Positions 1,036 to 29,993 of a DNA stretch of 56,962 nucleotides are shown piece after piece. Origin of the DNA: Octopus bimaculoides (Eukaryota). Position numbers and translations under genes: made by a program. The notes under the pieces were generated by a model that made no database searches, was not told the DNA's origin, and was given only the letters and a program-made list of their open reading frames with translations. The stretch covers positions 74,204,738 to 74,261,699 of the forward strand of contig NC_068988.1 of the NCBI RefSeq assembly GCF_001194135.2. The letters run 5' to 3'. Numbering within the stretch: the stretch's first letter is position 1; every line of letters starts with the position of its first letter.

Positions 1036-1211
1036 ATTTGCTCTCACCTCAGCTTGAACAACGAAGACAGACTATCTGCTGTTGCTGTAGCTTGTTATTT
1101 AGCAGAGCAAGGAGCAAATTTTCATCACAAAAACAAAAAAAATAGGACCCCTCTTGACATCATTGATGATTCGAATTTAAAAGAGAAACTCAACAGATTT
1201 GTGTCCACTCG
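1036..1211 (+). CDS. MIB2-like protein, internal exon (end of ankyrin-repeat region)
   Basis: Acceptor tttatag| and donor |gtacgt. Reads ICSHLSLNNEDRLSAVAVACYLAEQGANFHHKNKKNRTPLDIIDDSNLKEKLNRFVST(R), resembling the MIB2 'AAVACFLALEGADVSYTNHRGRSPLDL' segment. Ends in phase 2, matching the next exon. Upstream exons lie outside the window. Confidence 0.85.
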
Positions 1212-1294
1212 GTACGTATTCACTAAACATTAGGGCATAACCCAGCAAATTGTTTTGTATTTCGTATTGTGTGCATAATTACGTTTAAGGGAAT

Positions 1295-2610
1295 TAATGA
1301 AGCAATGGCAGTGTTTATTTTAGACACTACAGTGTAATCATGGGAAAATAAAGTTTAATTAGTTTTAATAAGTTTTTATTGATTTACACATTAAGCAACA
1401 CCAGTGTGTTCAAGACAGTGTACTCTTGAACATATAAAGTACAATTAGTTTTAATAAGTTTACACATGAAGCATTAAGAGTATTTGCTTAAGACACTACA
1501 GTGTACACTTTTACAAATGAATTTTAATTAATTCTAATTAGTTTACTCATAGAGCATTCTTGTTTTGGATACTACAGTATACTTTTGGACAGATAAAGTT
1601 TAATTAGTATTAATAAGTTTATGCATAGAGCAATAACGGTATTTGTTTCAACATTTATAGTGTAATTTTTGTTAGAAAAAGTTTAAATAATTTTATTTAA
1701 TTTACATATGAAGCAATAGTAGCATTTGTTTTGGACACTACTGAGAACTCTTGAGCAGATAATTATAATTAGGTTTAATTCAATAGAATTAGGTTATGAA
1801 AGTAGAAATAGCAATGTTTGTTGTATGTAGCAATAATGATGTTTGTTTTTAGACACTGTTGTGCACTCATTTTAATTAGTTTTCACTTATAACAATGGCA
1901 ATATTTTTTTAGACACTATTGTTTGATAACTGTCAGATAAAATTTGTTTTAATTAGTTTTTATTAGTTTATACATCTGTCAATAATAACTCTTGAAGAGA
2001 TAAAGTTTAAATAATTTTAGTTACTTTTAATTAGTTTACACATAGAATAATAGCAGTGTTTGGTTTAGATACTAACAATATAATCTTGACAGATAAGGTT
2101 TACTTAGTTTTAATTAGTTTAACTATGAAACAGTAGCAGTGCATGTTCTTGACACTACTCTGTACATTTAAACAAATAAAGTCTAATTAGTTTTATAGTG
2201 ATTGTTTTAGACATTATATTGTACCTTTGGATAAATAAAGTTTAATTAGTTTTCATTAGTTTACAATTGTAGCAATATGAATCTTTGCCTTTGACACTAC
2301 AGTGTACTCTTGGTTAGGCATAGTTTAATTAGTTTAATTAGTTTAAACATGTAGCAGTGTTTGTTTTAGACACTATTGTGCACTCTTTGACAGACAATGT
2401 TTAATTAGTTTAATTAGTTTACACATGAATCATCAGCAAATTTCTTTTTAGTCACTACTGTGTATTTTTGAACAGATAAAGTTCATTTAATTTTAATTAG
2501 TTTAATTAGTTTACTCATGAAGTAATAACTGTTTGTTTTTGACACTACTCTGTACTCAAAGAGATAAAATGTAATTAGTTTTACTCAGTTTACACCTGAA
2601 GTGACAGTTT
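1295..2610. repeat. Diverged AT-rich intronic minisatellite, ~75-85 bp unit, roughly 15 copies
   Basis: Recurrent AGACACTACAGTGTA...AGATAAAGTTTAATTAGTTTTAAT...TTTACACATGAAGCA. Confidence 0.85.
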
Positions 2611-2852
2611 AAATCTCTTTAGAATTACCCGCTTGTACACTTTACCATAAATAACAAAATTAGACACTTTGTACTACTGTATAATTTAACATAATACATA
2701 CTATTTCCCATAATTAACATTATTTATTTTTACTTCTATCAATGCTGTTGCTGCAAATAACCCTTAAACTAACTCCTACATCTTTACTATAACAACATCA
2801 CATAGTTTAGTGATGTTTTCTTTATTATAGCAACATCAATGGAATTAGTTAT

Positions 2853-3575
2853 TGATCTTTTCTGTTTGGCTGCACCTATGGAAATTTCAAAGTTTTGTGA
2901 AAATTTTGAAATTTGATGTACTTATTTAATTTTCCATGCTGAATCTTGGGAGTTAATTCACTTTTTCCAGAAATTAAAAAAAAAAAAGTTACAGAGGTTT
3001 AAAGTTCGATCATTTTTACCCTGTTAGAAAACAGGATTTGGAAGCTGTTATTTTGTGCTTGACAGTATGTGTTGTCAACTGTAAACAAATGAAACATTGG
3101 CGGAATTCTGCTTCATGCATACCATATAATCACTCATAACTTTTATTTTTTGGAATTTTCAGAAAATTTTTGCAAATTTGTAGTCTAATCAAGGAAATTC
3201 ATACAATTATGCAAAACCAAATAGAAATTTTGTGCATGATTTAAGGCTTTTTTAGCTGTTATTTTTAGCATATCTCACACTGCATGTATTTTAAGCATTT
3301 AATAAGTGACAAAAAGAATGCATTGTAAGCAGCTCAGTGACAGTTTGGTTTGTTACTATGGAAACAAGCACCTATATGTCTGGCTTTCGAATTGGCTAAA
3401 ATAACCCAAAATTTGCCAATTTTAAAAGCTATTAACTCTTTAATTAATGATTTATGGAGAAATTGAATTTCATGTCAATGATTACTTTACAAAACTACAC
3501 CAACATGCCAAGCATTCATATTTGGAACAAAAAAAAAAAAGAAATTGAAAAGTGGCAGCCAAACAGAAAAGATCC
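2853..3575. mobile_element. Non-autonomous DNA transposon (MITE-like) with 20-bp TIRs and 8-bp TSD
   Basis: GATCTTTTCTGTTTGGCTGC (2854-2873) is the exact reverse complement of 3555-3574. TTAGTTAT flanks both ends (2845-2852 and 3576-3583). Confidence 0.8.
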
Positions 3576-3589
3576 TTAGTTATATTTTT

Positions 3590-3745
3590 CTTCCCTATAA
3601 CAACAGCAGTAGGATTAGTTATGCCGTCTTCACTTTAACATCACAGGGATTAGTTATATCTTCTTCAAGGTAACAATAGCAGTGGGATTAATTATATCTT
3701 CTTTACAATAACAGCATCACAGGGATTAGCTAAGCCTTTTTTTTT
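3590..3745. repeat. Short minisatellite (GGGATTAGTTATATCTTC core, ~35-40 bp unit)
   Basis: About 4 diverged units. A further unit lies left of the MITE (~2830-2852), so the MITE split this array. Confidence 0.7.
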
Positions 3746-3881
3746 ACTGTAACATCAATGGATTCCTCCTTAAATGTTACTTAATAATGTTTTTACAAAA
3801 GATGTTTAATGTGAATATTATAATAATATTGTCTGTAATCTGCTTGATACTTGTAATGTTTTTGGTATTTTTATTTGATAG

Positions 3882-4030
3882 TCTGCAATGTTTATTGTGC
3901 AAAGATAACCAGGCCACTGTAAAATTCTATCCGTGCAAACATACAGTAACATGTTCGAATTGCTATTCCAAAAACAGGCTTAAAAATTGTATCCAGTGCC
4001 AACATCCTATAACCAGCAAGAGTGGATTTG
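3882..4030 (+). CDS. MIB2-like protein, RING-finger exon
   Basis: Acceptor tttgatag| and donor |gtgaga; phase 2 in, phase 1 out. LQCLLCKDNQATVKFYPCKHTVTCSNCYSKNRLKNCIQCQHPITSKSGF is C-x2-C-x11-C-x-H-x3-C-x2-C-x8-C-x2-C, a C3HC4 RING of MIB/IAP type. Confidence 0.9.
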
Positions 4031-4640
4031 GTGAGAAATTCTTAGATAATCTGTCTGTTTGTCTCATCGATTTGTGCTGTGGCTACGTATTTTTATGTTG
4101 TTATTGTTGTTGTTTAACCCCAGCTCAATTCTGACTTAGCAGTCTTATGATAAAAAGTGTTCCAGGTGTGAGTACCTTGTCTTTTCTCACTATCTATCAC
4201 TACATCCATTACACATTGTCTTCATCCAAATAGAAGACTTGCGTCACTTGAAGAGAGTACTGTCTGCAAGATAAGACTAATAAGCAACATTGTACGATAA
4301 GTGGTGGCTACAGGAATATCAATAAATCGCCAGTTCTGACAGTAAACATCTATTTTTAACACTCAACTGTGAGGCATTAGAGATGGATAATGACTTAACA
4401 ATATTTTGGGAATCTGATACTTAAAGTCAAAGGAAATTACTATTTTACCAAAGTTTCAGCTTTGGTAAAACAGGAGATTAAATCACAAAATTTCAACTGT
4501 TAATTTAAGGACCAACATTAGAGACTAAATGTTAACTCAGTTGTGAATGTTTGTGATCATTAAAAGGTGATATGGATAATTGAAATTGACTGTGTGTCTG
4601 TGAATATTGGCAATTAATTAAAAGTGACATGGATGATTAC

Positions 4641-5187
4641 TGTATAGTGGCTATCGTTGGCTGTTCAAGTGCGTTACTAAATGGAAAAACAGTTAGTATT
4701 AATCACCGTAGGACATTTTTGTGTATAAATATATTGTTTATTCTGTGTTCACCTTTTGTGGTGGAAGCATGTAGTGTGTTTCAAAAACATGTGCGTTTAC
4801 ATACAAAGAAAGTTTTGATTTTTGCTTTTGCACTGAAAGAAGTAACATATGTGTAATGAGAACAGTCATTTTGAGAATGTGTGTGTGATAAAATATCATT
4901 GTTTACAAATTGTATATCTTGTGTCGAGGTGAATAGACATGTGAGTCACACATGGGGAAACTTGCACGTGGAGCTACAGAGAAGATATGTGTCTTTGAGT
5001 GAAACCTGGCAGGAACTGGTAGCCGTGTAGCTCAGAATGAAGCTAGTGTCTCAGAACGAGGCTAGTGTATCAAAGCGAGGCTAGTGTATCAAAGCGAGGC
5101 TAGTGTATCAAAGCAAGGCTCATCGATATATTCATCTGCTGTGCAGGTTGACTCACATGTTACTATGTAATATGTAGCTCTGCTGCA
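4641..5187 (-). repeat. Probable 3' LTR of the Gypsy element
   Basis: A polypurine tract AGCAGGAGGC (- strand, 5190-5199) precedes TG at 5187. It ends in ...CCACTATACA at 4641, where the flanking minisatellite resumes. AATAAA on the - strand near 4740; internal 19-bp tandem repeat at 5039-5120. No partner LTR is present. Confidence 0.65.
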
Positions 5188-5898
5188 TAGCCTCCTGCTA
5201 GACTTAAAAGAGTCGAAAAAAAATAGAGATGGCATATGTAAATATGCAGTGCAAAAAGCAGGTAAGAACATGGAATACAAACATAAGGATGCAATACAAT
5301 AGAAAATGAGTAACTGAAATGAAAAGACAAAGCATGGTTAGAGTAAATAGAATATGAACGCAAAGAAATAAGCAAAATTTTCAAGTCGATTAGGTAAAGT
5401 TCGAAGGAATACTGTGAAGAACAAAACTGTGACATTGGTGATATGTCTTGAAAAGTTTTTGCTAAGTTCACAAATAGTTCATCATAGTTCAAATGTATAT
5501 AGATAGCTTGGTAGGCCAATTTACACGGTGACCACTATGAGTAGTAATGATGTATGTAGATGGAGGAGGGATTGGTGTGTGTGATGGTGTTGGTAGTGGT
5601 TGCAGTGGAGTGGCATTTGTTTTATGTCGTACTGTGAATGTGGGAGGTTATGAGGTGGTATTGTGTATGCCCGCTTAAGCCTGTCTATTGAGACAGTTTC
5701 CTTTTTACCATTAATGTCTATAGTATATAGTTTGTCTGTGTGCGACAGGATGCGATAGGGTCCCATGTATGGAGGTGTGAGAGGGGTTTTCCCAGCGTCT
5801 TTTCATAGAAACACATAGGTCCAAGAATCAATGTCTTTTGGAATTGATGATTTAGTGGTTTGGTGTTGTGTTGACTGTGGAGTGTGCGTACGAGTAGA

Positions 5899-6147
5899 TG
5901 TAATCGCCTTACCTCGGTTTTCCTTTCGTCGACTGCAAGTCTGTCATGCAGTATCCAATCCTTGAAGCTTGCCCCGACCCAAGGTACACCAGGAATAGCA
6001 GCTGCCTCTCCCAAACCTAGACCGTCGCTCAACACGTCTTGTCCTGACCACAACCCCGTTCGAAAAAGGGCACGAATCCCGATCGAGGCTCCCTCTGCCC
6101 TTTTTCCCCTTCCGGTCAGCCTCCCCAGACACTGACGTCATACCACA
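5899..6147 (-). mobile_element. 249-bp solo LTR nested in the Gypsy integrase
   Basis: TG...CA termini with near-identical 4-bp flanks (TAGA/TTGA). Excising it plus one flank restores the frame QELPPMS-TRTHTPQSTQHQTTKSSIPKDIDSWTYVF. Orientation is inferred from similarity to the LTR at 56442. Confidence 0.8.
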
Positions 6148-8659
6148 TTGACATGGGTGGCAGTTCTTGCATGTATTTGCAAAGTCTGTGTATGTACATA
6201 GTGGGGTCTTGTCTGGACAGATCCACTGGGGCCAACATCTTACCTGGCAATGAAAGAGGTGTGCCATAAATAAGTTCTGCTGGGGAATAACTGAGATCCT
6301 CCTTTATTGAGGCTCGACAGCCAAGAAAGACTATTGGAAGATATTCGCTCCAACGCTGCTGATCTGAGTAAGCATGCAAAGCAGCTTTCATATGACGGTG
6401 GGATCGTTCCACCATACCGTTGGACTGTGGATGGTAACTGGTGGTTCGAATCCAATGTGTGCCTATGGTCTTCATGAGCTCATGGAAGAGTTGTGATTCA
6501 AACTATTTTCCATGGTCAGTAGTGATGGTGGTAGAAACTCCGTACCATGATATCCATCCTGTGAGAAAAGCTTTGGCAACAAATTCTGCAGTGATATCTG
6601 CTAAAGGAATAGCATCTGGCCAATGTGTGAAACAATCAATGCAGGTGAGCAGGTAGGTATATCCCTGGATGACTGGCCAAGGTCCAACAAGGTCGATGTG
6701 TACATGGTTGAAATGCACATCTGGTGTGTTGAATGTGCCAAGGGGTGCACGGACGTGCCTATGCACCTATGACAGAAAAGGCAGGAGCGTGATCAAGCAG
6801 TGATGTCTCATCTCATATTTGGCCAAAAGAATCTAGCCGAAATGAGTTTCACTGTGGCGGTGACACCAGAGTCTGACAGGTTATGGTGTGTGCTGAGGCT
6901 GTCTGTGGGTCTCTGGAATGAAAGGACAAGAAGAATTCTTGGAAGTATTGCACAAAATCTGTGCATCAGATGTGGATTCTAGGAAGTACTTGAAGTTGCA
7001 TGTGGCAAAGGCAGGTGAGGACATATCAATTGTCTCTAAGCGAGGTTGATCTTTAGCCAGGAGATGCAGGTCGATGCCTGTGGGTGACGACAGCAAATTC
7101 AGTGGTTGGCATGATAAGGCATCTGCTGCAGTTTTATCTACACCAGAGATATGGCGAATGTCAGCGGTAAATTGGGAAATGAAATCCAAATGTCTGGTTA
7201 CCCACAGAGAGTACTTGTCAGGCTTCGAGCGCAGGGCAAAGGTGAGTGGACAGTGGTTGGTAAAAATTGTGAATTGGTGTCTCTTGAGTGTGTGCTGGAA
7301 ATGTTTGACTGCTAAATACATAGCTAACAGCTCCTGTATGAAAGTGCTGTAGCAAGTTTCAGCTGGTTTAAGCTGCCGAGAGAAAAAGGCAAGAGGCTGG
7401 AGTTGTTGCTGGTGAAATTGTTGTAACACTGCGCCTATAGCAGTGTTGGATGTATCCACTACAAGGGATATCTGAGCATCTGCGACAGGGTGGGCAAGAA
7501 GTGATGCCTGAGCGAGTTGCTGCTTTGCTGTGTTGAAGGAGTCAAGTTGGGTGGAGTCCAATGCTATTGGCTCATCCCTCTTTTTCCTATTCTGAAGAAG
7601 CATGTTTAGCGGATATAGGATTTCAGCTGAATGAGGAACAAAGTGCCAATAGAAGTTGAATAGTCCCAAGAAATGTCGATCTGACATAACAAGGTGGGTG
7701 GAGGCAACTCCTGCAATGCCTTCACCTTGTCAGGCAGTGGTGATATGCCTTTGGGGCTGATGACATGACCTAGGAAGGTCAAAGAAGATACACCGCAAAC
7801 ACATTTGGTAGGGTTGATCCACACTTGGTAAGTCTTGAACCACTCAAACAGCTGACAACCATGATGGAGATGTTCCTCGGGTGAAGTGCTAGCTATCAAG
7901 ATGTTGTCAATGTATGCATAGATGAAGTCTAAGTCTCGGACGACTTCATCTATGAACCTTTGAAATGTGCTGGCTGAATTCCATAAACAAAATGACATAG
8001 TTAGGAATTTGAAGGCACCTAAAGGTGTGGTTATGGCAGTCTTCAGAATATCCTCTGGATTCCCAGGAATCTGATGGTATGCCTTAACCAAGTCCAGTTT
8101 GGTGACTACTCTGCAGTTGTGGAGAGATGGTGCAAAATCCTGGATGTTGGGTATTGGGTACCAGTCTGGCTCCGTGATGGAGTTTAATCTCCTGTAGTCA
8201 CCAGTGGGCTGCCAGTCCCCAGAATGCTTTGGAACCATGTGCAAAGGGCTATTAGAGGGGCGCCTTGGCTGCCTTTAGTTTCTCTGAGGAGAGACGGCAA
8301 GGGGGAGAAAAAAACCGAGCACCTTTAGTTTCGATGAAATGGGTGGTGGTGTGAGTTGGAGCAGCAGTAAAAAAATTTCGGTTAGTCAGCTCCAGATATG
8401 AGTTTAAGAGTGCATGGTATGGGTCGTCCATAGTAGTGATGAAAAATACTGGATTAACTGTAGGGGTTAGTGGCCTTTTAACTGGGATAGAAAGTTCTGT
8501 GGTCGCGTCTCATAAGTGCTGAGTATGCATGTCCACAAGTAGGTGGAAGTGGTGCAAAAAGTTTCCACCTAATATTGGGTAAGGGAGATCTGCGACTGTA
8601 AAAATCTACTTGAAGTCATGTCACAGATCTAAATCTAAATCTCTGCTACAACTGCTTTA

Positions 8660-8990
8660 GGTATGGTTGTGAAAGTTGATAATTGGTAAAAATTGATATA
8701 GTTAAGGTGTGGCTGTGAATTGGTAAAAGGTGGAGTAGATAATTACAGCTTTATGTGTGGCTATGAATAATGGTAACTGGTAAAAGGTGGCTGACATGAT
8801 TACCATTTTGAGTGTGACTGAATGTTTGTAATTGGTAAAATATATCATGGATAATTGAATTAGGGGTTTGGATGTGGATGTGAATAATAGTAATAGGTAA
8901 AAAATGACATGGACAATTACGATATTGCTAATGAAGATTTCAAATGGTTACAAATTGGTATGAAATGTTTATAATTGAGATTTGCATCCT
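8660..8990. repeat. Diverged minisatellite (AATTGGTAAAA...GACATGGATAATT); also present at ~4530-4640
   Basis: The same motif occurs on both sides of the Gypsy remnant, suggesting the Gypsy inserted into this array. Confidence 0.65.
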
Positions 8991-9034
8991 GAATGTCTCA
9001 TTTCAAGATAGTGTCTCCAATATTATATAAAAAG

Positions 9035-9425
9035 AAGAAAAGGGAATATTCTTTATTCTTTTACTTGTTTCAGTCATTTGACTGCAGCCATGCTGGAGCA
9101 CTGCCTTAAAGGGGTTTAGCTGAAAAAATCAATCCCAGGACTTATTCTTTGTAAGCCTAGTACTTATTCTATCGGTCTCTTTTGCCGAACACTAAGTTAC
9201 AGGAACATAAATACATCAGCATCAGTTGCCAAGCGGTGGCGAGGAAACAAGCACAGATACACGCACACACATAAATACATACATATATACAATGGGCTTC
9301 TTTCAGTTTCCACCTAGCAAATCCACTCACAAGGCTTTGGTTGGCCTTGCCCAAGGTGCCATGCAGTGGGACTGAACCTGGAACCATGTGATTGGGAAGC
9401 AAGCTTCTTCTACACAGCCATCCCT
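9035..9425 (-). mobile_element. tRNA-derived SINE (abundant family, several copies in the window)
   Basis: Shared body (CAGTCATTTGACTGCAGCCATGCTGGAGCAC...; GGGACTGAACC B-box-like head) is also seen at 11330-11538/12975-13143, 20958-21380 and 38022-38236. Confidence 0.8.
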
Positions 9426-9439
9426 TCAGGTAGATGGCC

Positions 9440-10590
9440 CTGCTCAATCCATAGAAAAGGCATAGGAAGAAACTCCATAAGACATACCTGGCGTAAGCTA
9501 TGAATATATAAGAGGTGCAGCAACATCAGGGGAAGGTTAACAGGGAAAATAGCTTTTGTGTGTGGAAGGTGCACAAGTACAATAAACACTAAAAATGTTC
9601 AGAAAATAGACTCCCTCCAATACCAAGGGAGAAATCTAGAAGCAGTTGATAACTTCCATTAACTAGGTAACAAAGACAGTTGTGGGGGTAGATGCTCCAA
9701 GAGCATAGCTGTGAGAATAAGAATAGGCTGGGCAAAGTTCAGAGTGTTCCTACCTCTGTTGGTAACAAAAGATCTCTCCTCAGAAGGAAAGACAGACTGT
9801 ATGATGCCTGTGTGTGAACAACCATGCTACACAGCAATAAAACATGGGCTGTGACCACTGAGGACATGCATAGGCTTGAAAGAAATTAAGCTAGTATGCT
9901 TTGCTGGATGTGCAATGTCAGTGTGCATGTATGACAGAGTGGCAAGCATCTTGAGAGAAAAGATGGGCACAAGAGGGATCATATGTGGTGTGCAAGAGAG
10001 ATGATTGTGCTGGTATGGGCATGTGAAGCATATGGACAAGGACAGCTGTGTGAAAAAGTACTGATCTCTAGCTGTGGAGGAACCTGTGGAAGAGGTAGAC
10101 CCAGGAAGACATGGGATGAGGTGGTGAAGCATGATCTTCAAATGCTTGGCGTCACAGAGGGAACTTTGGTGATATGTCATGCTTGAGAAAACCCATCAAG
10201 CCAAGTGAAATCATAGTCATGGCCGATGCCAGTGTCACATAACAGGCACCCATGCCAGTGGCACATAAAAAGCACTCTTTGAACGTTAGGTTTCATGGAG
10301 GCAATGATAAATGACCAAGACCTTTAGCAATATGCTATGCTTGAGAAGACTCACCAAACCAAGTGAAATCATAGTTGTGGCCAATGCTGGTGTCACATAA
10401 CTGGCACCCATGATGGTGTCACATAAAAAGCACCCATTGCACTCTTGCAGTGGTTGGCATTACGAGGGCGTCTAGCTGTAGAAACCATGTCAAATCAGAT
10501 TGAAACCTGGTGCAGCTCACTACCTTACTAGTTTAAGTCAAACCTTCTAACCCATGCCAGCATGGAAAGCAAACACTAAATGAGGATGGT
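9440..10590 (+). mobile_element. RTE LINE 3' fragment with 3' UTR
   Basis: Degenerate RT C-terminus (GWAKFRVFLPLL; ...GRGRPRKTWDEVVKHDLQML) followed by the UTR also seen at 46613-46785 and 54430-54790. Confidence 0.8.
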
Positions 10591-10599
10591 CACAAAATG

Positions 10600-11300
10600 A
10601 TGTTGATCACAAAATCATCAACAGGCATAATGTGAAATTAGCATATACGGCTTCTCACAATCTAGAATACTATGTACACAAATTAAATAACATAAAATTC
10701 AATAGGATAAAACTAGAGGGGGTTTACAGAAAAATCACAGATCATAACAAAATAAACAAAATGGAATGGTTGTAAATAGAAATTATAAAAGGTCATCCAA
10801 AATAAAAACAGGTTCAAACAGCACCATACAATTTGCCGTGCAATCCATACCTGAGGAAAATGAGAACACTGTTATAGGAGGTAGAACAAATGTGACCACC
10901 AGTAATAACTCCACTTACAGAACTGGAAAAAATATAACGTGTAACTTCAAATGGTAAAATAAATGCAAGTTTAACAACAACTGCCTCATAAAGAATGTGG
11001 TTTACAAATGTTAAGTGAAGATGGATACACAAAAATACGTGTACATTGGTGACACCAGAGACACCATAAAAAAATCGTCATTTTTCAATGTAAACAAAAG
11101 GTACTCTACATCATCGTCTAACCTCATATGGGGACTCAAGCACAATGGAGTGGAGCATACAACCAACTGGTCTACAATAAAAAATGCTACACCATACAAT
11201 AGAACATTGTTGGTGTGCAACTTATGGCTAGAGAAAATCCTGGAGATCATCACATCAGAGAAAACATAATTAATAGATACTAGCAGAGATACCCAGCCTT
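10600..11300 (+). mobile_element. Penelope-like element remnant (GIY-YIG endonuclease)
   Basis: CLIKNVVYKC...KYVYIGDT...NWSTIKNATPYN...CNLWLEK is a Penelope-type GIY-YIG domain, with stops. Confidence 0.75.
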
Positions 11301-11329
11301 GCTTGGGATTAAAATGGCATAGATTTTTA

Positions 11330-17070: not shown

Positions 17071-18519
17071 TATGGATAACTAAATTACAACAGGAATATA
17101 GTCCATTTTTTTGTGTTATAGTGCATTGTTGTACCATTCAAAACTTTTTATTCTTTATATATATATATATATATGTATATGTTTGTATGTATGTACTTCT
17201 CACATCTTGGATGTTTCTCAGGGCAAGAATGGTAGGACCAAAAGAGTGTCTAGGCACCTGAAACAATTAGTGAAACCATAGTATATGTTCTCAAGTCATA
17301 CTTGCTCATGAGTGATGGTTGAGTGAACTTTGTACTTTGCTTAAATGTAAGCATACAATATTTATTACTGTAAAATAATTCTAGACTTCAATGGAAGTAC
17401 TGTAATGTCAGCTGTACTGACACTCAAATTCAGATTATATATAGTGTGTGTGTGAGAGGGGGGGAGGCAGAGAGAGAATTTCTTTTCATTTACCTAGAAG
17501 TGATAAATTACAGAGCTCACTACATAAATGTAGAGTATTCTTTAATGCATCATAACTGAAAGGCTCATAAATCCATTTCTCCAAGTTTCATGTTTCTGAT
17601 TATTCATCTGATAATCCAAGCCTTTTTTCTCTCAAATCCAATAATCTCATCTTATATTCATCATCATTTAACATCTATATTTCATGATGGCATAAGCTGG
17701 ACAGTTTGATATGATCTGATGGTTCTAAAGACTGCATTGCACTCAGTGTCTGCTTTGGTATGATTTCTATAGCTAGATGATCTTCCTTTACTACTTTACA
17801 GTGTGTACTGGGTGCTATTTTAATGGCACCAGGACTAGTGAGGTCACAAGACAGCCTACAAGACTAAGATCCCCTTGGCAGTGGATTTATGCTACTGGAT
17901 AAGAGAAAGAGAGAAAGGGACAGAACAGAACAGGTTTCTTGCATTAAAGGAGCAACACAGTTACTCACATTATTGAAGAGAGGTCAGGAGTGTCCAGGAT
18001 AGAGTTGGAAGGAGATAAAATAGTGATGATTATGTGTTAGACTGGGGATTCTAAGTACAAGGTGAGTAGAAGTGAGTGAAACAGAACAGGGAGGACAGGT
18101 GGGTAGAGGTATGAAAGAGTGAAGGATGGTTAGAAACTGGGAATGGATGAGGGTTGAACATAATGAAGAGCAGGTGTTGAGATGTTAAGTAGGAACGGTA
18201 AGGAGAATTGGTAACAACAGTAGAAATTGGGCAGAATTGAAGTGGGTTGAGGGTGACTAACAGGGGAAACATGTGGTGGTGGAGGAGTGATAATTTAGTG
18301 GCTCAGGAAGGAGATCAATATAAACTGTTGGGGGAGAAAACAGTGTTAGGAATGAAAGATGGATAACAAGTGAAACGCTTCTAGATAGTAAAAGGGGTAA
18401 GTGGTATAAAAGAAAAGCTGGTGAAGTATGCAGTTTTTGTTCATTTAATTACTGCTGCAGAATATGGCAGTTAGAGAAACAATGAGAAGTGGAAATGTTT
18501 TGAGGAGAAAATTAGGCAG

Positions 18520-20380: not shown

Positions 20381-20895
20381 TCGCAATCCTGTGCACTTCA
20401 CATCTCTGATTTTTAATGTTGCAGGACATGAATTGTTTGAATATATTTTGAAATATTATATAAAAGTTATAAAGAAAATATTAATCTTATGCTATTTTAA
20501 AAAGATCATGCAAGTGACAATATTTTAACGTTTTTTAAAATTATTTTCAAGAGAATACCATTACAAAAATTTTTTTTGGCATATTTGAAAAATATTCTAA
20601 AGTGAGAATGACTTTAAAAATGCGATAGATATTTTGTAAAAGACCCGTTCGTAACCTCAGTATGGAATAGTTTTTTCGAGTGCATTCAATGTATCTCCTC
20701 TTCAATGATTTGGCTGCTGTTTCTAGTACGCTCTGCTCCACATAACACTTATTTGCTATAAAGGACCCGAAATACCTGTTACGTGGTAGCAGGGCATGCA
20801 AGAAATAACAGCCAAATCTTTCCAAACTACAAAACAAAACTCTGTTGCTGGGAAACTTAGTTTCCCAGTGACCCACCTGGTCACGGATAGTCCAG

Positions 20896-20926
<31 letters not shown>

Positions 20927-20957
20927 GTATTTATGTATGTATGTATGTATAAGGCAC

Positions 20958-21380
20958 AAGTGTGGCTGCATGGTAGGAAGTTTCCTTCCCAACTATATGG
21001 TCCCAAGTTCAGTCTCACTATGTGACACCTTGGCCAAGTGACTCCTACTATAGACTTGAGCTGACCAAAACCTTGTGAGTGGGTTTAGTGGATGGTGGAA
21101 ATAAGTCCATTGCGTGTGTATGTGTATGTATGTGTGCGTATCTGTGTGTGTGTGTGTGTGTGTGTGTACTTGCATGTCTTTGTGCTGGTGTTTGTCCCCC
21201 ACTGCCATTTGGCAACTGGTGTTGGTGTGTTTACGTCCCTGTAACTTAGCCGTTTGACAAAAAAGACCGAGAATAAGTACCTGGTTTAAAAGTGGTGGGG
21301 TTGATTAGTTCTCCTAAACCCTTCAAAGTGGAGCCTCAGCATGGTTGCAACCTAATGACTGAAACAAATAAAAGATAAAG
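20958..21380 (+). mobile_element. tRNA-derived SINE, near full length
   Basis: Head AAGTGTGGCTGCATGGTAGG...GGTCCCAAGTTCAGTCTC, internal (TG)n and tail ...AATGACTGAAACAAATAAAAG; same family as 9035-9425. Confidence 0.8.
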
Positions 21381-21389
21381 AGAGGATTT

Positions 21390-22460
21390 AGGAATTAAGG
21401 AAGTCCAGACAAATACCTCAGTGAGCACTCTATGCATAAAACTTGGTTAACAAAACGTCAATGAAAGAAAATCAGAATCCATATTCAGTATGTGATGAGA
21501 TATTATATGCACAAAGAGTGGTAATACCTGAAGCGCTGCAATACAGAGTATTAAAAGACTTCCGTGTAGGACATCTGGGGATTGTCCAGATGAAGAGCCT
21601 CATGAGGAGTTACATTTATTGGCCAAATATGGACAAGCAAATTGAGAGACTGCATTTCGTTTGTATATGCCCAATTTTACCACACTTAAAACATGTTTTA
21701 TCTTTGAAGGGACAATCTTTCCTCAAATGTCAGTCTCCACAACCATTGCACCGTTTTGAATTTATATATTTTCTTCTATCTGTACTTTCTTTATGCATTT
21801 GTACATTCTTATTATTGTCTTCTATTTTTCTTGTATCATCTTGAAGATTTATTATTTGTTGGCATTCCTCAGCCACTTTCTGCAAGGTTAGTTTCACATC
21901 TTGATTCAGCTTTGATAATATTCTTTTTCTAATTTATGCATCTTCCATTGCCACCTTTAATGAATATTAGGCACTTGAACATATCTGGCGTTAATTCTTC
22001 CAGCTTGAACCTTTCGCAAGCCTTATTAACCATACCAGCATATGTTACAAAATCTTCGGACTCGTTTTTCTTTAGGTTTAAACATCTCCACCGAATGTTA
22101 AACTGCGAACTTTTCTTGCTAAAAATATTAGTCAAAATATTTATCGTTTCATCAAAACACAATTCCGCGGGCTTTCTCAGCAAAATAAAGTTACAAAAAC
22201 TTAAGCTTTCGCAAAAGAAGTCTTACCTTCCTTTCACTAGACCATCCCTTACATTCCTCTCTGAATATGCCTTTGTATCGTCTGTAAGATGCAGTAAAAG
22301 TAGTTCCTTCATCCAGTTTGTAGTGAAATTCTTCGATGGAATTTGCAACACCGTCCGCTGAAAAGGATTCTGTCATATTTCTCGACTGCAGTAACAATTC
22401 TGTTAACATATGTAGTTGCTGCTGTTGCTGCTCTTGTTGTTTGACAACTACTTTCATCTT
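21390..22460. mobile_element. Rearranged Gypsy fragments: integrase Zn-binding region (+, ~21390-21650) abutting gag (-, ~21655-22460)
   Basis: + strand QRVVIPEALQYRVLKDFRVGHLGIVQMKSLMRSYIYWPNMDKQIE. - strand gag ANSIEEFHYKLDEGTTF..YRRY...KVRLLLRKL...FNIRWRCLNL, with zinc knuckles (CFKCGKIGH). Confidence 0.85.
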
Positions 22461-22790
22461 GCTTGCATGTGTCCCCTACTTCTGCAGTTATAACATATTG
22501 GCAGTCTCCCCTCCACCACAACTCTCAGTCGAGTCTCATCGCGGAGTACCAACTCTTCCACTATTTTATGTAAATCTGGCAGGGTTATGTGGATCATGAC
22601 TTCCAGGCCATAACTCCACCAGTTGATCTCTCTTGACTTTTCCACTTTTAACACCTCCACTTCATCTTCACAGTTGTAGAGGATGGCTGCCACCAGCCAT
22701 TCCTCGTCTATCTCCGGGGGCACTCTCTTTATTCTAACTCTTGCGGCACACTTCCCGCAGTAAGTCAGTAAGAGTGCCCACTTTGCTGTT
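22454..22790 (-). mobile_element. LINE ORF1-like fragment with a CCHC zinc knuckle
   Basis: ...LRVVVEGRLPICYNCRSRGHMQAR* resembles L1/Tx1-type ORF1; the last Cys is replaced by a stop. Confidence 0.55.
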
Positions 22791-22799
22791 CTTCAATGA

Positions 22800-23386
22800 C
22801 TAGCTTTCACATCCACTATTTATACATATTGGACTAGCTTACTTATCGTCTGGGAGCATCCACACAACAAATACATTCATAAACACCAACTCAAGGAATA
22901 CTAGTGGAATATTCCCAACAAAACTTCTGTCAAATGTAAACATAACAAGCTAGATATTGTTGTTTGGGACAGAGGGGCAAAGGTATGTACCATCATAGAG
23001 GTCAGCTGCCCTGCAGATATAAATGTCTATTTGAAAATCAAAGAGAAAGAGGATATTTATGGACAACTGCTTCGAAACCTTCAGTTTCTATATCCAGACT
23101 ATGAATTCATATTCATACCAATAATAATTGGAGCACTAGGTTTTGTTAGTAAATGCTTAAAGGAGCATCTGGATAAACTGGGATTTTCAGAAAGAGAAAT
23201 TGGCCAGCTGATTCGTACATTACAAGTGCAGTCTGTGAGTTGAACAGTAAAAATATGCAAGACTTTTCTCAAGTTCCAAATGTGAATTTGTTTGTGTTAA
23301 CTACATTCCAAATATGGAGCCTTGTATCTTTGTTGGAAACAGGTTCCCTCCTCAGTGGAAGATTTATAATAAAATATAGAAGAGAC
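22800..23386 (+). mobile_element. R4/Dong-like non-LTR retrotransposon 3' fragment (restriction-like endonuclease)
   Basis: DIVVWDRGAKVCTIIEVSCPADIN...EKEDIY..L...IPIIIGALG is a PD-(D/E)xK REL domain; it is followed by (CATA)n. Confidence 0.8.
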
Positions 23387-23435
23387 ATACATACATACAT
23401 ACATACATACATACATACATACATACATACATACA

Positions 23436-24540
23436 TTAAACTTGGAAGGCAGCTCCTTGAGCAGCATTCCTTGTCTGATAACCTTAAACACATGCCCAAA
23501 GAGGTTGTACAACTCTATTGCAACATATCATCAGATGAAAGAATGAACGTATATGAGCAGAAGACCATGCATGGATATGTTAGTAAAAAGTTCCAGGGTG
23601 ATAATAACATTGAATCATCAAAGCAGTCTATCATGGACCAACAATCAGATTACTATCTCACACTTTGAAGGGTATGTGCTTGCAATCCTGGAACAGGAAA
23701 TATCAACCAGATACTTGATGCACAAAAGGAACAGAGATGCAGGAAAAGCAGTAAAATGTGACAACTGATGCAGACTTTGTGGAATTAAGATATCATTCAC
23801 ATCATAAGCAGTTGTCAGAAAATGTCATCATGATATTATCTACTGTATAATGAGATCCGTCGAAAGGATAACCTTGAAGGCAAAGAAATATGAACCCACA
23901 GTATGGTGGGAGCCATAGCCACTCATAACAAAAAGGAGCTCTAGTGGAATGTCCCAGTGAAAACCTCAATAAAACGTAAACACAGTAGACCTGATATAAT
24001 GATTTGGGACGGAGAAGAGAAATTGTGTACAGTTGTGGAAATCAGCTGCCCAGCAAATGTTAACATAAAGCTAATGGTTAATGAAAAAGAAAATACGTAT
24101 GCTGAACTATTGAGAAATGTGCAGTTACTCTATCCAGATTACAAGTTCAGGTTTATACCTGTAGTTATTGGGGAACTGCCTAAATACCAATCTTGAGAAA
24201 ACCAGAAAGGAGAAAGCTGATTTGAAGACTACAGATCCAAGCCATCACTGGAACTGTAAAAATCTGTAAAACTTTCCTGAAGATTATCATTTAAGTATAT
24301 ATAAGCATGTCTAGATATGCAAGTATATGTATGAAAATACATACATAAAACAAAACATACAAATCTGCACGTATACATACATACAAATAAAAATATCCCA
24401 TTGTTGATGTTGAAATTCCAATGGAGACTTGGATCTATGTTAGAAACCGACTCTTTCTCTATTGGCAAGAAATCTTGAAATAAAACTGAATAATGGCATA
24501 CAATTATGTGAATAAACAAATAAAACTGCTTGGATTTGAT
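23436..24540 (+). mobile_element. Second R4/Dong-like 3' fragment (CCHC + REL)
   Basis: MHGY...EGYVLAILEQEISTRY, CRLCG...HIISSC, and SRPDIMIWDGEEKLCTVVEISCPA...EKENTY...IPVVIG, with frameshifts. Confidence 0.85.
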
Positions 24541-24699
24541 ATACAAAATATATATACATGTATATAAGTAAATAGAGGGAAAGCAAAGACTAAAAATTTT
24601 CAGACAATGATAATCAAGTATAAATATATAGATATTTATATATTAACAGAGCACACTTACACAGAGTACAAATGACTGAGAAAATTAAAGGGGTGAGGT

Positions 24700-26550
24700 G
24701 TGACGTTAAAAGTCCAACAGCTGTTTCTGGGGATTTGGAGATCCATCATAATGTTGGCAGATGTAGTTCACCAGAATATGCAACCAGTAATGAAAACAAA
24801 TAAACATTGGATAAATTGAGTCTCCATCTACAGGGTTGCAAAAAGTCTAACTTTTCAGATCATGATACAGAAAAGTTTAAAGGTGGAATGGTTAAATGTG
24901 GAAGGCAAGGAATAGTGGTAGTGTAAGGAGTGTGGAAGCAGGGAAGGGTAAGAGATAATAGAGTTGGGAGATGAGTGGGAGGAGTGGGATGGGTAGTATT
25001 TGAAAAGTGGTCAGTTGTTGTTGGGTTTGTTAAAATTTTGGGATAAGGGCTATAGAACAAAAGGAAGTTGAGATTGTGAGAAAAGGAAGAGGCAATTATT
25101 AAAGGAAGTGAAAGGGTCCATTAACAGATGCTAGTAGGGTGGCAAAGGGGAAATCAGAGAAAGAAGTTAGATTGGCAGCAGAGGGAGATTACTAAGGTAT
25201 GTAGAAAAGTATGAGAGAAGAGAGAGGGAGGTGGACAGAGAGGCAGAGAGGGAGAGGTAGGTTGGTAGTCATGGCAGCAGTAGTTAGTGCTAGATGGTTT
25301 AGGTTGGAGGGAGGGATCAGAGAATGAAGGTGGGTTGGTGGCAGAAGGAGAGTACTGAGGTATGGAGAAGTGTATGAGAGTAAATTGGAGTTGGATAGAG
25401 AGGAAGGAAGAGGTGGATAGGTTGGTAGGTAAGGCAATAGGATAGATGCAAGTGGTTTCAGTTGAAGAGGAGATAGATGACAGGAAAAGAATATATATGA
25501 AGATTGGTTGGCTGTATGGGTGGGGGTACTGAGTAAGAGGAATGTGCAAAGGTAATCATAAGAAGAAAGAATTCAGTAGAAAGGGTGATATTAGTGAAGG
25601 GGGTATATTGCTTGTACAATCAAGTTGTACCTTAAGGTTAATCATAAGTAGGGTGAATTGTAATTAGGAGATTACATATATTTAACAAAATGAGCAAATG
25701 ATGAGTAGAACCTGTGCTTATAAGAGAGGATTACATCTGAGAATTTATTAAGTAATGAGGAATTGTGGTTGTGAACGATGGTGAGTGACCCTTAAACACA
25801 GTTTACAAATGCAGAGGTTAGTGATGTATAGAGGAATCTCACTTATGATGGACCAGGATAGGGTATAGGGAATGTTTTGGGATTTGAGGTTGCTAAGGAG
25901 GTAAATAATTTAGAAATTTGGATTGGACAAAGAGTTCATGCATGCTCAATAGCAGCACTTGAAATCAACAGTGCTGCCAATGTAAACCCTAGCTTGGTGG
26001 GAGCATGGTGTTACTACTTGGCATTTGTAGATTACATTTTTGTGTAGACAGAAACCTCCAAGAGGGCAGAGTTGAAACACCTGGAATTTGCACATTTTCC
26101 TGCCTGCCCTGCAGTTGGAATTGATCACTAGGAAGGTCAGGTCCGAATGGTCAGTTGCCAGCAAAGAAGAATGGGAGATATTATCAGTATCTGTGTTGGA
26201 TTGGGAGGGGGTACCACTGCTAGTTTACGTGATCATATCAGTAGCACTATGGGGAGAAGCATTAAGGGTGGTATTATTGAGTTGGGTAGGGTTACTAAGG
26301 GTTGTATTATTGCAACTAGATGGGTTGGGGTAGAGTTCAGTCAGATAGATTGTAGGGTCTAAGAACAGGCATTGAAGTTTGCATCTGTTAGAGGAAGCAA
26401 TTATGGATCCTAACTTAGGTGTGGTGATGTAGGAGATTTTAATAGATGATTTATTGAAGAAAGGGTAATATTTAGGCTGGGAAATTAGAGTTTAGAATTT
26501 TAAAGAAAAGTTTAGGTAGGGATTTAACTTACCTAAAAGGTGGCTGTCAG
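24700..26550 (-). mobile_element. Penelope-like remnant: GIY-YIG fragment, long pyrimidine-rich 3' region, degenerate hammerhead end
   Basis: CPLGGFCLHKNVIYKCQV...VYIGST (25946-26164). On the - strand, CTGGTGA...GAAACAGCTGTT near 24715-24775. Confidence 0.65.
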
Positions 26551-26553
26551 ACT

Positions 26554-27876
26554 TGTAACACCATACCTTCGCCCCTTTAATTTTCTTTGTTGTTTCTACT
26601 CTGTGTAAGTTTGCTCTGTGAACATATACATATCTACTTGAATATTCATTGTCTGAAAATTTTCGGTCTTTGTTTTCTTTCTATTTACTTGTATACATGT
26701 ACATATATTTTGTTTATCAGACCCAAGTAGTTTATTTCTTTATTTGCATCATTATTTCCATATCTGCTCACCTAGATTCATCTTATAGTCACTCTTTACC
26801 CCCACATATTTGGTCCCTTGTAAAGAGGTCAGAGTGTAGGTTCAAATCATTTGAGCACTGTAGCGAATCTTCTCTCTCAGTTATATATACATGCAAATGC
26901 GAACGTAGCAGATAACATCTAGCTTTCAGCTGCATCTTGGGACCCTGTTGTGTCCACCACTCCGATTGGTTGGTAGAGGCGCTCTTTTGTCTCTAGTTCT
27001 GTTTCGCACCAGGCTGCAGACCAACCAATCATAGCCTTCCGATAAGGTCACGTGGAATGGTTTTCTAAACCCCTCTGTGAGCTGATTTTTCTCTATACAA
27101 AAGCCAGCTTCGTCTGAGCTAGGTCGTCACGGCTTCAGACCTTCTGAGATCTAGCCATTGACCACAGAGCACCAACCAGCCAGTTTCCAGCGACGACATG
27201 ACTCCGCTCTACTGGAGAATCAACACCACCGTTCAACTGTTTACTACAAGCTTTGTCACCAGCATCTACACCGACGTCTCTACGTACACACTGCCAACAG
27301 CGCCCGCACAGTTTCTCTCAACACTGTTTGTGTGAATCACTTCACCATGAATAACAGCCAGAACTCAACCAGTGAGAACCATTTGTACCAAGTAACCGGT
27401 CGCAGCATCGTAGCCTCAACTTCTTCTCACGACATGTGACTCTTTGGCTCTGCTATTCGGCCCCAACCTCTTATGTACAGACTTTCAACTACTGTGTACC
27501 TTCACTAAGAACTGGGATTTCTTATCCTTGTGTTCAGGACACTTAACGTCCTTGGTATAGACTCTTTTCTATGCTTTGTATTCTCTCGCACTCACACATA
27601 CATGTTTGTATCCACACACTCTTTTGTTTACATGACGGCCTGTCTTATATTGTGCTATTATTATGTCACATTCACTCACACGCACATACAGTTTAATGCT
27701 CCAATAAAACCTTTCCCTTTATACTTCTTTACCAGTTGTGTCTCTCTCTTTTCCTTGTTGGCACTTCATCACATTCACTTGTGAGTTCTTATTTATATAT
27801 TTTGTGTCAACCGTGCGATGCGTTAAAAGAAGCCTTTCCTTCGTCACCATTCTCCTTGGTCGCATGGTCATCTACA
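26554..27876 (+). mobile_element. Solo LTR (~1.3 kb), related to the LTR at 13833-15089
   Basis: TGT...ACA termini; CCAAT 27025-27029, CACGTG 27049-27054, TATACAAAA 27094-27102, AATAAA 27703-27708. The 3' end (...TTCGTCACCATTCTCCTT..CGCATGGTCATCTACA) matches the other LTR. No clean TSD. Confidence 0.75.
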
Positions 27877-28434
27877 GCACTACTAAGTGTTTTCTATATT
27901 GATAATCTCTGGATTTCATCTGGTGATCTAGTGAATCTATATATGTCTGTGTATGTGCATGTGTGTGTATGTATGTATGTATGTATGTATGTATGTATGT
28001 ATGTGTGTATGTATGTATGTGCATATGTATACATATAGTATTGCAATATGTCAAGAAGTGTGGTATTGTGCTGCCTACAGGTCCCAATTAAGTAGGTATA
28101 ATTCAATAACTTTCTTAGTCTTGTACACTTGAAGTGTACCTTGCTTTGGAATTCAGAAGATGATTATAGTGAAAGACAGAGGTGAGAGAAGACTGTCATG
28201 TTGTAGATTTAGCACAGATGACAGAAAGGAAAGGCTAAAGAAAGAAAACTAAAGTATAATCAGCGAAAAGTTAAATGAGATAATTGCATCATTGTTAAAT
28301 TATGTAGGAGTCTTGATTCATAGCAGACATTTAGAAGGGCAAGTGTATTTTGTTTTGATCCTAATAAAAATGTTGACCAAAACCAGTTGATTTGATAATA
28401 AGAACATCATACAACAATAAAATATAGATTCTTT

Positions 28435-28640
28435 TCTTTTCTACTCTCAGCACAACATTTTTGGGGAGGGAGCCAGTCGATTAGATTGACCCCAGTACGC
28501 AACTGGTACTTAATTTATTGACCCCAAAAGGATGAAAGGCAAAGTCAACCTCAGCGGAATTTGAACTCAGAATGTAAAGACAAACGAAATACCACTAAGC
28601 ATTTCACCTGGCATGCTAATGTTTCTGCCAGCTCGCCACC
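28435..28640 (-). mobile_element. Second tRNA-derived SINE family (also + strand at ~34330-34540 and ~35200-35370)
   Basis: Shared GAGTTCAAATTCCGC..GACTTTGCCTTTCATCC..GGGGTCGAT body. Confidence 0.75.
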
Positions 28641-28715
28641 TTCAATAAAATGTAGATTATATAAATAGAAAAACTTTACTATAAAAGGTAAAACATGAAT
28701 TTATTTTGTTTTCAG

Positions 28716-28787
28716 AGTGTCAAAAACTTGAAGAACGGGACCTCATGATGATTAGCAAATTGTTGGGAAGAAAATGGTGGCAAGTAG
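28716..28787 (+). CDS. MIB2-like protein, Death-domain exon 1
   Basis: Acceptor ttttgttttcag| and donor |gtgcgt; phase 1/1. (E)CQKLEERDLMMISKLLGRKWWQV(G) fits Death-domain helices 1-2 (L..I...LG..W..LG). Confidence 0.8.
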
Positions 28788-29269
28788 GTGCGTATAAAAT
28801 AACTTTACCAAATTGATTTCTATAAAGGTAAATTTTAACTGAAAATTTATCTGAAAAGTTGTGTATATTACTCATATTTAATAAAACATTTACAAGATTT
28901 AACATAGTAGTAAGGACAAATGACACAATAAATTAAATATTGTTTCTTGGGGTATGAAACAAAAATATCTCATTCTGTTGGGGCAGATATGTCTGTGTTT
29001 GGGAATGGTTTTGTTTGTGTTACTTTTTTTATTGCATTTACTGATAGAGGCTGGAGGGTGGTGGAATTTAACCCTGTTTTGATAGTATTATATGCTTTCA
29101 AAGATATTCTTTTCTAAATATGCCTGTCTAGCTAATTAGAACTTGATACTGCCAGTCAACCCCTCTCAATTATCACTATGACATGTATAGTTAAATTTTG
29201 GGTAGAAATCAAAGATCAATGACATGCATGATCAAAGTCACTGTCACCTGACTATCCATCTGGTTAAGG

Positions 29270-29680
29270 ACTACACTTTCACTGACATGCATGTGGTGCA
29301 ATGTTGTAGTTTTGACATGTTGCTATACGTCCATTGTCCAGTTTCCATCTAGGTGAGCATGACACCAGTTTCCATCTAGGTGAGCAGTGGTTACTTGTAA
29401 ATGGTGTAATGTTGCAGTCTACACATGTTGTTGTCTCCCAACTATCCAGTCTAGTTGAAGATCATACTTAAATGACATGCACTGGTTAACTGTGTGTGGT
29501 GCAACATTACTGTCTAGACACACCATGTCTCTCTATTGTTCAGTTTTCATCTAGTTGAGAACTACTACACTTTACTGACATGAAGTGGTTAATTGGTGTG
29601 GTGCAGTGTTGTAAACAAGATATGTTGTAGTCTTTCCACTGCCCAGTCTAGGTGAGGACTACACTTCACTGACACGTGGT
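29270..29680. repeat. Intronic tandem repeat (~95-100 bp unit, 4-5 diverged copies)
   Basis: Recurrent CTACACTTTCACTGACATG..GTGGTGCAATGTTGTAG..TCCAGT..ATCTAGGTGAG. Confidence 0.75.
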
Positions 29681-29772
29681 GGTTAATTGTATATTGAGCA
29701 GTGTAGGTATCTTTTATATTATTAATGTTGTTATTACTGTTGTAGTAATTCATATTATTGTATTTGTTGTAG

Positions 29773-29993
29773 GTATCTTCTTAGGAATCAAAGTTGTTGA
29801 ACTGGAAATTATCAGAGGTGATTGTCCACTTGAAATTATACATCAAAGTTTCCAAATGTTACACAAATGGTTAAATCGTAGTGCAACTGGGGAATGCACA
29901 GTTAACCTCCTAAGAAAAGTTCTTGAAGAAGCTGAATGTTTTGATGCACTTGATTACCTTCAGAAAAATCAGGAATTTCAATGTAATTGCTGA
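29773..29993 (+). CDS. MIB2-like protein, terminal Death-domain exon
   Basis: Acceptor tttgttgtag|, phase 1. (G)IFLGIKVVELEIIRGDCPLEIIHQSFQMLHKWLNRSATGECTVNLLRKVLEEAECFDALDYLQKNQEFQCNC* has the Death-domain pattern LG....I..I......Q...ML..W......T...L...L. AATAAA at 30054-30059. Confidence 0.85.

Follow-up and report, generated by a model that had tools for sequence, protein, structure and literature searches.

Does a locus of Octopus bimaculoides encode a RING-type ubiquitin ligase that carries its own death domain (DD), and what could such a protein do in the animal? The question is raised by a stretch of 56,962 nucleotides (contig NC_068988.1, positions 74,204,738 to 74,261,699 of the forward strand; hereafter the window), in which an earlier note, made from the sequence alone, had read a Mind bomb-like E3 ligase ending in a DD. 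The four final exons of a genuine protein-coding gene lie in the window; the gene product is organized as ankyrin repeats (ANK), RING, linker and DD. Four AG/GT-bordered segments of the + strand (1036-1211, 3882-4030, 28716-28787 and 29773-29993, the final one closing with TGA) join with compatible phases into 618 nt of a single open frame of 205 codons, exactly as the note had them. The spliced frame is 100% identical, over its full length, to residues 67-271 of the 271-amino acid (aa) protein that NCBI names 'E3 ubiquitin-protein ligase MIB2 isoform X1' of O. bimaculoides (P0001). In a search of 5.8 billion proteins its sole two matches were P0001 and the 239-aa isoform X2 (P0002). The gene is located on chromosome CM046608.1 of assembly GCA_001194135.2. 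The identity to RefSeq, the Pfam assignment of the RING, the structure and profile matches of the DD and the MIB1-type ankyrin repeats all uphold the ANK-RING-DD architecture. Its parts in the window are the following:

1036-1211, + strand: coding exon 2 of 5, aa 67-125; degenerate last ankyrin repeat and helix before the RING (LSAVAVACYLAEQGANFHHKNKKNRTPLDIIDDSNLKEKLNRF)
3882-4030, + strand: coding exon 3, aa 126-174; complete C3HC4 RING (CLLC…CKH…CSNC…CIQC) running to …SKSGF; donor in phase 1
3976-3977, + strand: alternative internal acceptor AG of isoform X2, located by comparison of P0002 with P0001
28716-28787, + strand: coding exon 4, aa 175-198 (ECQKLEERDLMMISKLLGRKWWQV); DD helices 1-2; 72 nt, symmetric phase 1-1
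29773-29993, + strand: coding exon 5, aa 199-271 and TGA; DD helices 3-6 and short C-terminal tail

The exon for residues 1-66 of P0001 lies ~31 kb before the window, on the other side of an 8.8 kb assembly gap (8,849 N) that directly precedes the window start. Exon 1036-1211 is a 100% tblastn match to P0001 aa 67-125, a stretch that can be aligned with the final repeat of human MIB1 ANK (PDB 8v0e). Use of the X2 acceptor in the next exon costs 32 aa, including six of the eight zinc ligands, and yields a RING-less ANK-DD protein. The site reads aaaaacag/GCTT in O. bimaculoides versus aaaagaa/GCTT in Octopus vulgaris; because its AG is absent from the latter, isoform X2 is probably minor.

The RING is recognized by Pfam zf-C3HC4_3 (PF13920) with an E-value of 4.6e-10 and 39.6 bits for a cut-off of 27. 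Its eight zinc ligands (C5, C8, C20, H22, C26, C29, C38 and C41) are invariant in alignment A1 of 15 family members. A Foldseek comparison of the RING half of the predicted structure with the PDB returns the RINGs of cIAP2, IDOL, XIAP and BIRC7, and the closest RINGs by sequence profile and structure together are those of cIAP1/2, XIAP, BIRC7 and IDOL.

The C-terminal domain is a death domain by sequence, profile, paralogues and predicted structure, despite failing the Pfam Death model itself (PF00531, gathering cut-off 22.6 bits), which gives no match at E-values up to 1 with either the spliced protein or its C-terminal 97 aa. The Death-fold assignment of the note is thus carried by structure prediction and not by the Pfam profile. 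The top 13 matches of phmmer against PDB sequences are all DDs, led by those of ankyrin-G (1.2e-5), PIDD (2.7e-5) and RIPK1 (1.5e-4) and followed by ankyrin-1 and TNFR1. With a family profile the RIPK1 DD is hit at 1.1e-11, the ankyrin-G DD at 1.2e-9 and the PIDD DD at 3.6e-9, together with CRADD, FADD, Fas, TRADD and TNFR1. Paralogues that are 38-49% identical clear the Pfam Death cut-off (P0013 with 29.5, P0016 with 23.8, P0030 with 43.9 and P0039 with 45.1 bits), and these positive paralogues match the window DD at E-values from 1.5e-15 to 1.6e-9. AlphaFold2 was run on a 148-aa construct with a 42-sequence family alignment, after a single-sequence model of P0001 that reached a predicted local distance difference test (pLDDT) score of only 38.8 had been discarded. 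The model has a pLDDT of 82.5 overall and of 90-95 over most of residues 60-140, with one block at 65. Exon 4 is modelled as a helix (58-78), in which DSSP joins DD helices 1 and 2 into one kinked helix. Foldseek aligns the model to the DDs of ankyrin-G, ankyrin-1, PIDD, FADD and RIPK1 with target-normalised template-modelling (TM) scores of 0.70-0.87 and root-mean-square deviations (rmsd) of 1.1-2.9 Å. Its first match is the ankyrin-G DD (TM 0.77-0.81, rmsd 1.1-1.7 Å), after which come the DDs of FADD, PIDD, ankyrin-1, RIPK1 and TNFR1; no CARD, DED or PYD is found among the top 50 matches.

The ankyrin part is of the Mind bomb type. In a comparison of residues 1-174 with the PDB, the MIB1 ANK domain 8v0e is the best natural match (E-value 9.3e-20), only designed multi-repeat DARPins scoring higher. 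The alignment is one collinear stretch from query residues 1-118 to 251-381 of the 386 of the chain, reaching the C-terminal end of MIB1 ANK. Profile A3, which covers the end of the ANK region and the RING, also finds 8v0e as its best match overall (E-value 7.5e-11), on the degenerate terminal repeat of the family. The resemblance to MIB2 that the earlier note had drawn holds to this extent and no further. Because no MIB/HERC2, ZZ or REP domain is present in any scanned member, the protein is not MIB2 in the defining sense: MIB/HERC2 and ZZ gave no match in ten family members, including the 653-aa model of the O. vulgaris orthologue, which starts with ~10 ankyrin repeats. A BIR domain was likewise not matched in P0001 or nine relatives. 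The protein has a single RING followed by linker and DD, not two or three C-terminal RINGs, and the homologue search with profile A3 retrieved 15 Octopus proteins only, from 266 candidates, and no canonical MIB1/MIB2. Notch-ligand endocytosis depends on the MZM/REP head (PMC10925295); the link to this process that had been proposed for the octopus protein has no basis, the head domains not being found in the scanned members. From the direct match of the ankyrin repeats we infer that the ANK-RING module shares ancestry with the Mind bomb (MIB1/MIB2) lineage, minus the MZM/REP head and the later RINGs. Replacement of the terminal RINGs by a DD is one possible history among others.

The RING and DD exons are separated by a very long intron, most of which is accounted for by a block specific to O. 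bimaculoides:

4031-28715, + strand: intron from the RING exon to the first DD exon, 24.7 kb, with three gaps and transposon remnants
9991-26477, no strand assigned: O. bimaculoides-specific repeat/transposon block of 16.5 kb, without collinear counterpart in O. vulgaris

The assembly gaps (11539-11548, 12017-12546 and 14237-14522) lie all within this intron, touch no exon and fall in the species-specific block. The orthologous O. vulgaris locus (L002, from OX597821.1) has no N, and its RING exon is 7.4 kb from its first DD exon. Both intron flanks (4031-9990 and 26478-28715) match the O. vulgaris intron collinearly, alike in order and orientation, and the whole block between them corresponds to the adjacent O. 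vulgaris positions 63287 and 63291 of L002. Across the gaps, the scaffold is ordered as in an independent genome. The splice from RING to DD is found in the RefSeq model, conserved in the O. vulgaris genome and present in at least 44 paralogous models, as the earlier note would have it. No further family exon, such as a second RING or a linker cassette, was detected: tblastn with 172 family and DD proteins matched only the four exons in the sequenced part of the window.

The same intron carries remnants of mobile elements. Fragments of a long terminal repeat (LTR) retrotransposon pol gene (RVT_1, RNase H and integrase) lie at 5500-8244 on the - strand; this region is collinear with O. vulgaris at ~90% identity, so that the insertion is older than the divergence of O. 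bimaculoides and O. vulgaris. A GIY-YIG endonuclease open reading frame (ORF) occupies 15038-15355 (- strand, Pfam 23.5 bits) in the species-specific block that holds the gaps. Next to it, within the stretch 15038-16166 (- strand) that comprises them all, are reverse-transcriptase-like ORFs that have no Pfam match, an arrangement as in Penelope-like elements.

The O. vulgaris locus has five coding exons with the same lengths as in O. bimaculoides (198, 176, 149, 72 and 221 nt), and the splice dinucleotides and the stop position are also the same. Its ORF is intact over 271 codons, with 85% protein identity to O. bimaculoides, and the 72-nt DD exon (L002 64530-64601) has an open frame. The deposited O. 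vulgaris protein P0003 (CAI9726805.1, 653 aa) jumps from within the RING exon to the last DD exon, skipping the 3' end of the former and the 72-nt exon, and so lacks the last zinc pair as well as DD helix 1. Since both exons concerned (L002 56970-57118 and 64530-64601) are undamaged in the genome and have good splice sites, P0003 is probably mis-spliced. The coding sequence (CDS) has no indel in 816 nt and no stop among the 63 substitutions between the two species, whereas the adjacent introns and 3' flank have 26 gap openings in 4,092 aligned bases (6.4 per kb). At the intronic rate ~5 indels would be expected in the CDS, and the probability of finding none is ~0.005, indicating that the frame is being kept despite fast evolution. 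By the Nei-Gojobori method, applied to the 63 differences, constraint is strongest on the RING (dN/dS 0.26), followed by the DD (0.60).

Where the gene begins is less simply read. The RefSeq model starts at an internal Met within an ankyrin repeat, and the frame of its first coding exon is open upstream as far as a good acceptor, cacag followed by GACCAAATACTGATG. The O. vulgaris model continues upstream of the same point with ~10 further ankyrin repeats. The 10 kb that precede the first coding exon of O. bimaculoides yielded no ankyrin, MIB/HERC2 or ZZ exon. The first base of the O. bimaculoides locus that was fetched (L001) aligns 16 bp downstream of a 753-nt ankyrin exon of O. vulgaris, and this collinearity to within 16 bp suggests that the missing ANK exons lie just beyond the fetched locus and were not lost. 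The true protein may be ~650 aa long instead of 271. A RING-like tblastn match ~10 kb upstream (L001 624-692, E-value 0.14) is riddled with stops and was dropped.

The gene belongs to a family of dozens of Octopus genes, whose architecture is already visible in public automatic annotation. A HMMER scan of 1.84 billion representatives found 95 relatives of the window DD, 31 of them below 1e-10, and a search with the family profile gave at least 81 clusters below 1e-5, with O. bimaculoides, O. sinensis and O. vulgaris as their only sources. Many of these clusters carry precomputed Pfam Death (PF00531), RING (PF13920) and ANK assignments, and a complete C3HC4 RING is followed by a DD in 44 of the 65 proteins checked from the three species, isoforms counted. 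Thirty representatives looked up by name were from Octopus, save for an Argonauta hians protein with a DD alone, more remote DD proteins from amphioxus, sea stars, a cod and a bird, and one metagenome cluster. The ANK-RING-DD combination was not found outside Octopus in the protein collections or the full-text literature searched, and the latter held no paper describing this architecture either. The lineage-specific paralogue of the earlier note is therefore not a single one, but a member of a family detected only in Octopus. Family members are spread over several chromosomes, and several share scaffolds of ~10-12 Mb and ~35 Mb, suggesting arrays. Linkers between RING and DD vary among paralogues and have short repeated units; some models are ANK-DD or DD only. 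The nearest paralogues of the window gene are at most 55% identical to it in the DD, as compared to the 85% identity of its orthologue, which indicates an old family member that split from them long before O. bimaculoides and O. vulgaris separated. Automatic names in the family include MIB2, MIB1-like, ankyrin-3-like, 26S proteasome subunit 10 and RIPK1, and UniProt tags several members 'Death domain-containing protein'.

Other octopus proteins encoded outside the window have related domains. The adhesion-type G protein-coupled receptor P0029/P0104 (XP_014788728.1, XP_052821851.1) combines LRR, GPS and 7tm_2 with a cytoplasmic DD that falls in the same clade of octopus DDs (44% identity with the window DD, 27.6 bits in Pfam Death); seven transmembrane segments with an own DD are unusual. 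In P0031, P0033, P0018 and P0005 a DD follows an N-terminal part of low complexity, and inspection by eye shows no kinase part. They are candidate partners of the ANK-RING-DD proteins, and their names are misleading.

What is the octopus protein most like? With Mind bomb it shares the unusual terminal ankyrin repeat (VACYLAEQGANFHHKNKKNRTPLDIIDDSNLKEKLNRF in the octopus protein), the match to 8v0e over 118 residues and a zf-C3HC4_3 RING directly after it; most family members are named MIB2 or MIB1-like by NCBI. It differs in having one RING instead of two or three, in lacking MIB/HERC2, ZZ (the MZM region) and REP, and in a C-terminus that is a DD and not the coiled-coil RING3. Mammalian MIB2, too, targets a protein with a DD, RIPK1, but contacts it via the MZM region and not via a DD (PMC5912950). 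The IAPs, such as cIAP1/2 (BIR-UBA-CARD-RING) and the oyster BIRC2/3-like and BIRC11 proteins (BIR-DD-RING), are alike in carrying a death-fold domain and a zf-C3HC4_3 RING in one polypeptide. The RINGs of cIAP1/2 and XIAP are also the closest solved ones, and the pairing of DD and RING is known in molluscs from the oyster proteins (PMC8917759). Unlike IAPs, the octopus protein has ankyrin repeats in place of BIR, and its RING precedes the DD and is not at the extreme C-terminus. Ankyrin-1/2/3 have N-terminal ankyrin repeats and a C-terminal DD, that of ankyrin-G being the closest solved DD by sequence and fold, but they have no RING and carry ZU5-UPA before the DD, whereas the octopus ANK is of Mind bomb type. 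Ankyrin repeats and a DD are also combined in ANKDD1A/B, NF-kB p100/p105 and DAPK1. Finally, the lineage-specific DD expansions of amphioxus, echinoderms, cnidarians and bivalves are similarly taxon-restricted, multi-copy and fast-evolving, and outside octopus the DD is matched most closely by multi-DD proteins from Branchiostoma, Patiria, Acanthaster and a fish. They differ from the octopus family in that its ANK-RING-DD combination was found only in Octopus in the collections searched.

We consider it probable that the window gene is a member of an Octopus ANK-RING-DD family of Mind bomb descent, coding for a RING ligase that is recruited by its own DD. The DD would dock the protein by homotypic DD-DD contacts into oligomeric assemblies like those of TNFR/RIPK1, MyD88 or PIDD, which act in cell death and innate immunity. 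There the RING, with an E2 of UbcH5 type, would ubiquitinate its neighbours in the assembly or itself, while the ankyrin repeats would choose a further partner. Clustering driven by the DD could bring RINGs together, the usual route of activation of IAP- and MIB-type RINGs. Family members whose RING lacks the linchpin Arg, including the window protein, and the RING-less X2 could be non-catalytic adaptors or decoys instead. A comparable arrangement exists in cIAP1/2, which have a CARD ahead of the RING; the cIAP1 CARD reportedly regulates the cIAP1 RING, a finding credited to Lopez et al. in 2011. MIB1 ccRING3 is a RING that is most active when dimeric or clustered (PMC10925295), and mammalian MIB2 binds oligomerised RIPK1 and ubiquitinates lysines in or near its DD, restraining cell death (PMC5912950). 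The coupling of ubiquitin ligation to death-fold signalling advanced in the earlier note is plausible by analogy with these proteins.

A number of observations weigh against this explanation. The RefSeq gene model is a prediction, the model lengths disagree at the 5' end (271 aa in RefSeq versus 653 aa in O. vulgaris), the Pfam Death profile does not recognize the DD, and the MIB1 RING3 chain is absent among the listed PDB matches. Directly behind the last zinc Cys stands a Gln (C-I-Q-C-Q), also in the O. vulgaris orthologue, and not the linchpin Arg, which no more than 10 of the 42 distinct RINGs of the family retain; in MIB1 RING3 and IAPs this Arg contacts E2~Ub. The RING moreover occupies the position of MIB1 RING1, directly after the ANK domain, and MIB1 RING1 is catalytically inert, RING1 and RING2 both being without ubiquitin-transfer activity (PMC10925295). 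Because of the Gln and the RING1 position, a non-catalytic adaptor or decoy is a serious rival: the DD would enter or cap death-domain assemblies, the ankyrin repeats would bind a partner, the RING would be structural only, and modulation would be achieved by competition. The RING-less X2 predicted by RefSeq and the several ANK-DD or DD-only models of the family fit such a role. We nevertheless hold it unlikely, since the eight zinc ligands are invariant across paralogues, the RING is the part with the lowest dN/dS, its nearest relatives (cIAP1/2, XIAP, BIRC7, IDOL) are active and the X2 acceptor is not conserved in O. vulgaris.

Evolutionary rates also speak against the favoured explanation. 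The dN/dS of the whole CDS is 0.66, not significantly below 1 (chi-square ~1.9 by our own estimate), that of the ANK part is 1.4, and substitutions are no fewer in coding (7.7%) than in intronic sequence (~6%), all of which points to fast evolution or weak constraint of the gene. Such figures would be expected of a decaying duplicate, a 5'-truncated family copy that drifts neutrally with a frame open by chance, and so would a model whose first residue is an internal Met, before which the frame stays open as far as an acceptor, as well as very long, transposon-filled introns. This reading is nonetheless very improbable in view of the intact ORF with equal exon lengths and splice sites in two species, the lack of stops and of the ~5 indels expected, the constraint on the RING, and the upstream collinearity to 16 bp from an ankyrin exon, which places the ANK exons probably outside the fetched locus. 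Least likely of all, to the point of being barely worth entertaining, is a chimeric model in which RING and DD exons come from two genes or from a mis-scaffolded region, as an intron of 24.7 kb with three gaps of unknown length might suggest. The order RING then DD recurs across the gap-free 7.4 kb intron of O. vulgaris with collinear flanks, the exon phases are compatible, 44 paralogous models in three species link RING to DD, and paralogues such as P0007 have the …KSGF/E… junction too. We thus retain the DD-recruited RING ligase of Mind bomb descent as the best joint explanation.

Other features of the window lie apart from this gene. An intact ORF of 261 aa at 38500-39285 (- strand) encodes ~8 tandem C2H2 zinc fingers (Pfam zf-C2H2 1e-48, zf-H2C2_2 4.5e-80) and corresponds to the one further gene called in the locus that was fetched (L001 79502-80266, 254 aa); we presume that it is part of the known octopus C2H2 expansion. 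A transposase fragment with a Tc3-type helix-turn-helix (Pfam HTH_Tnp_Tc3_2, 4e-12) lies at 51864-52259 (- strand), and a mariner-type-like transposase is split over several ORFs at 53186-54182 (+ strand), the last of them without Pfam match. Microsatellites of (CA)n, (TA)n and (CATA)n type are very dense at 1-1035 and throughout the window (for example 13090-13420, 27872-28106 and 40330-40600), and give rise to a large number of spurious long ORFs in the ORF list, in which Y, I, C, V and H abound.

What does this family mean for octopus biology? It is a lineage-restricted shuffle of well-known domains, apparently unstudied, and a warning on annotation: the labels 'MIB2', '26S proteasome subunit 10', 'ankyrin-3' and 'RIPK1' fit none of these genes. 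Signalling in cell death and innate immunity is built mainly from two kinds of component, DD assemblies and RING ligases, which adaptors usually join. A family in which they are fused, lineage-restricted and multiplied would be a natural experiment in pathway rewiring and a handle on the poorly understood immunity of cephalopods. We put forward only tentatively, as an idea with the odds somewhat against it, that octopuses built and expanded death-domain-tethered ligases of their own, in which a Mind bomb ANK-RING was wired into death-fold signalosomes by its own DD. If true, these proteins would accomplish in cis the task that mammalian MIB2 performs in trans on RIPK1, and the dozens of fast-evolving paralogues would amount to a diversified control of cell death and innate immunity for an animal that lacks adaptive immunity.

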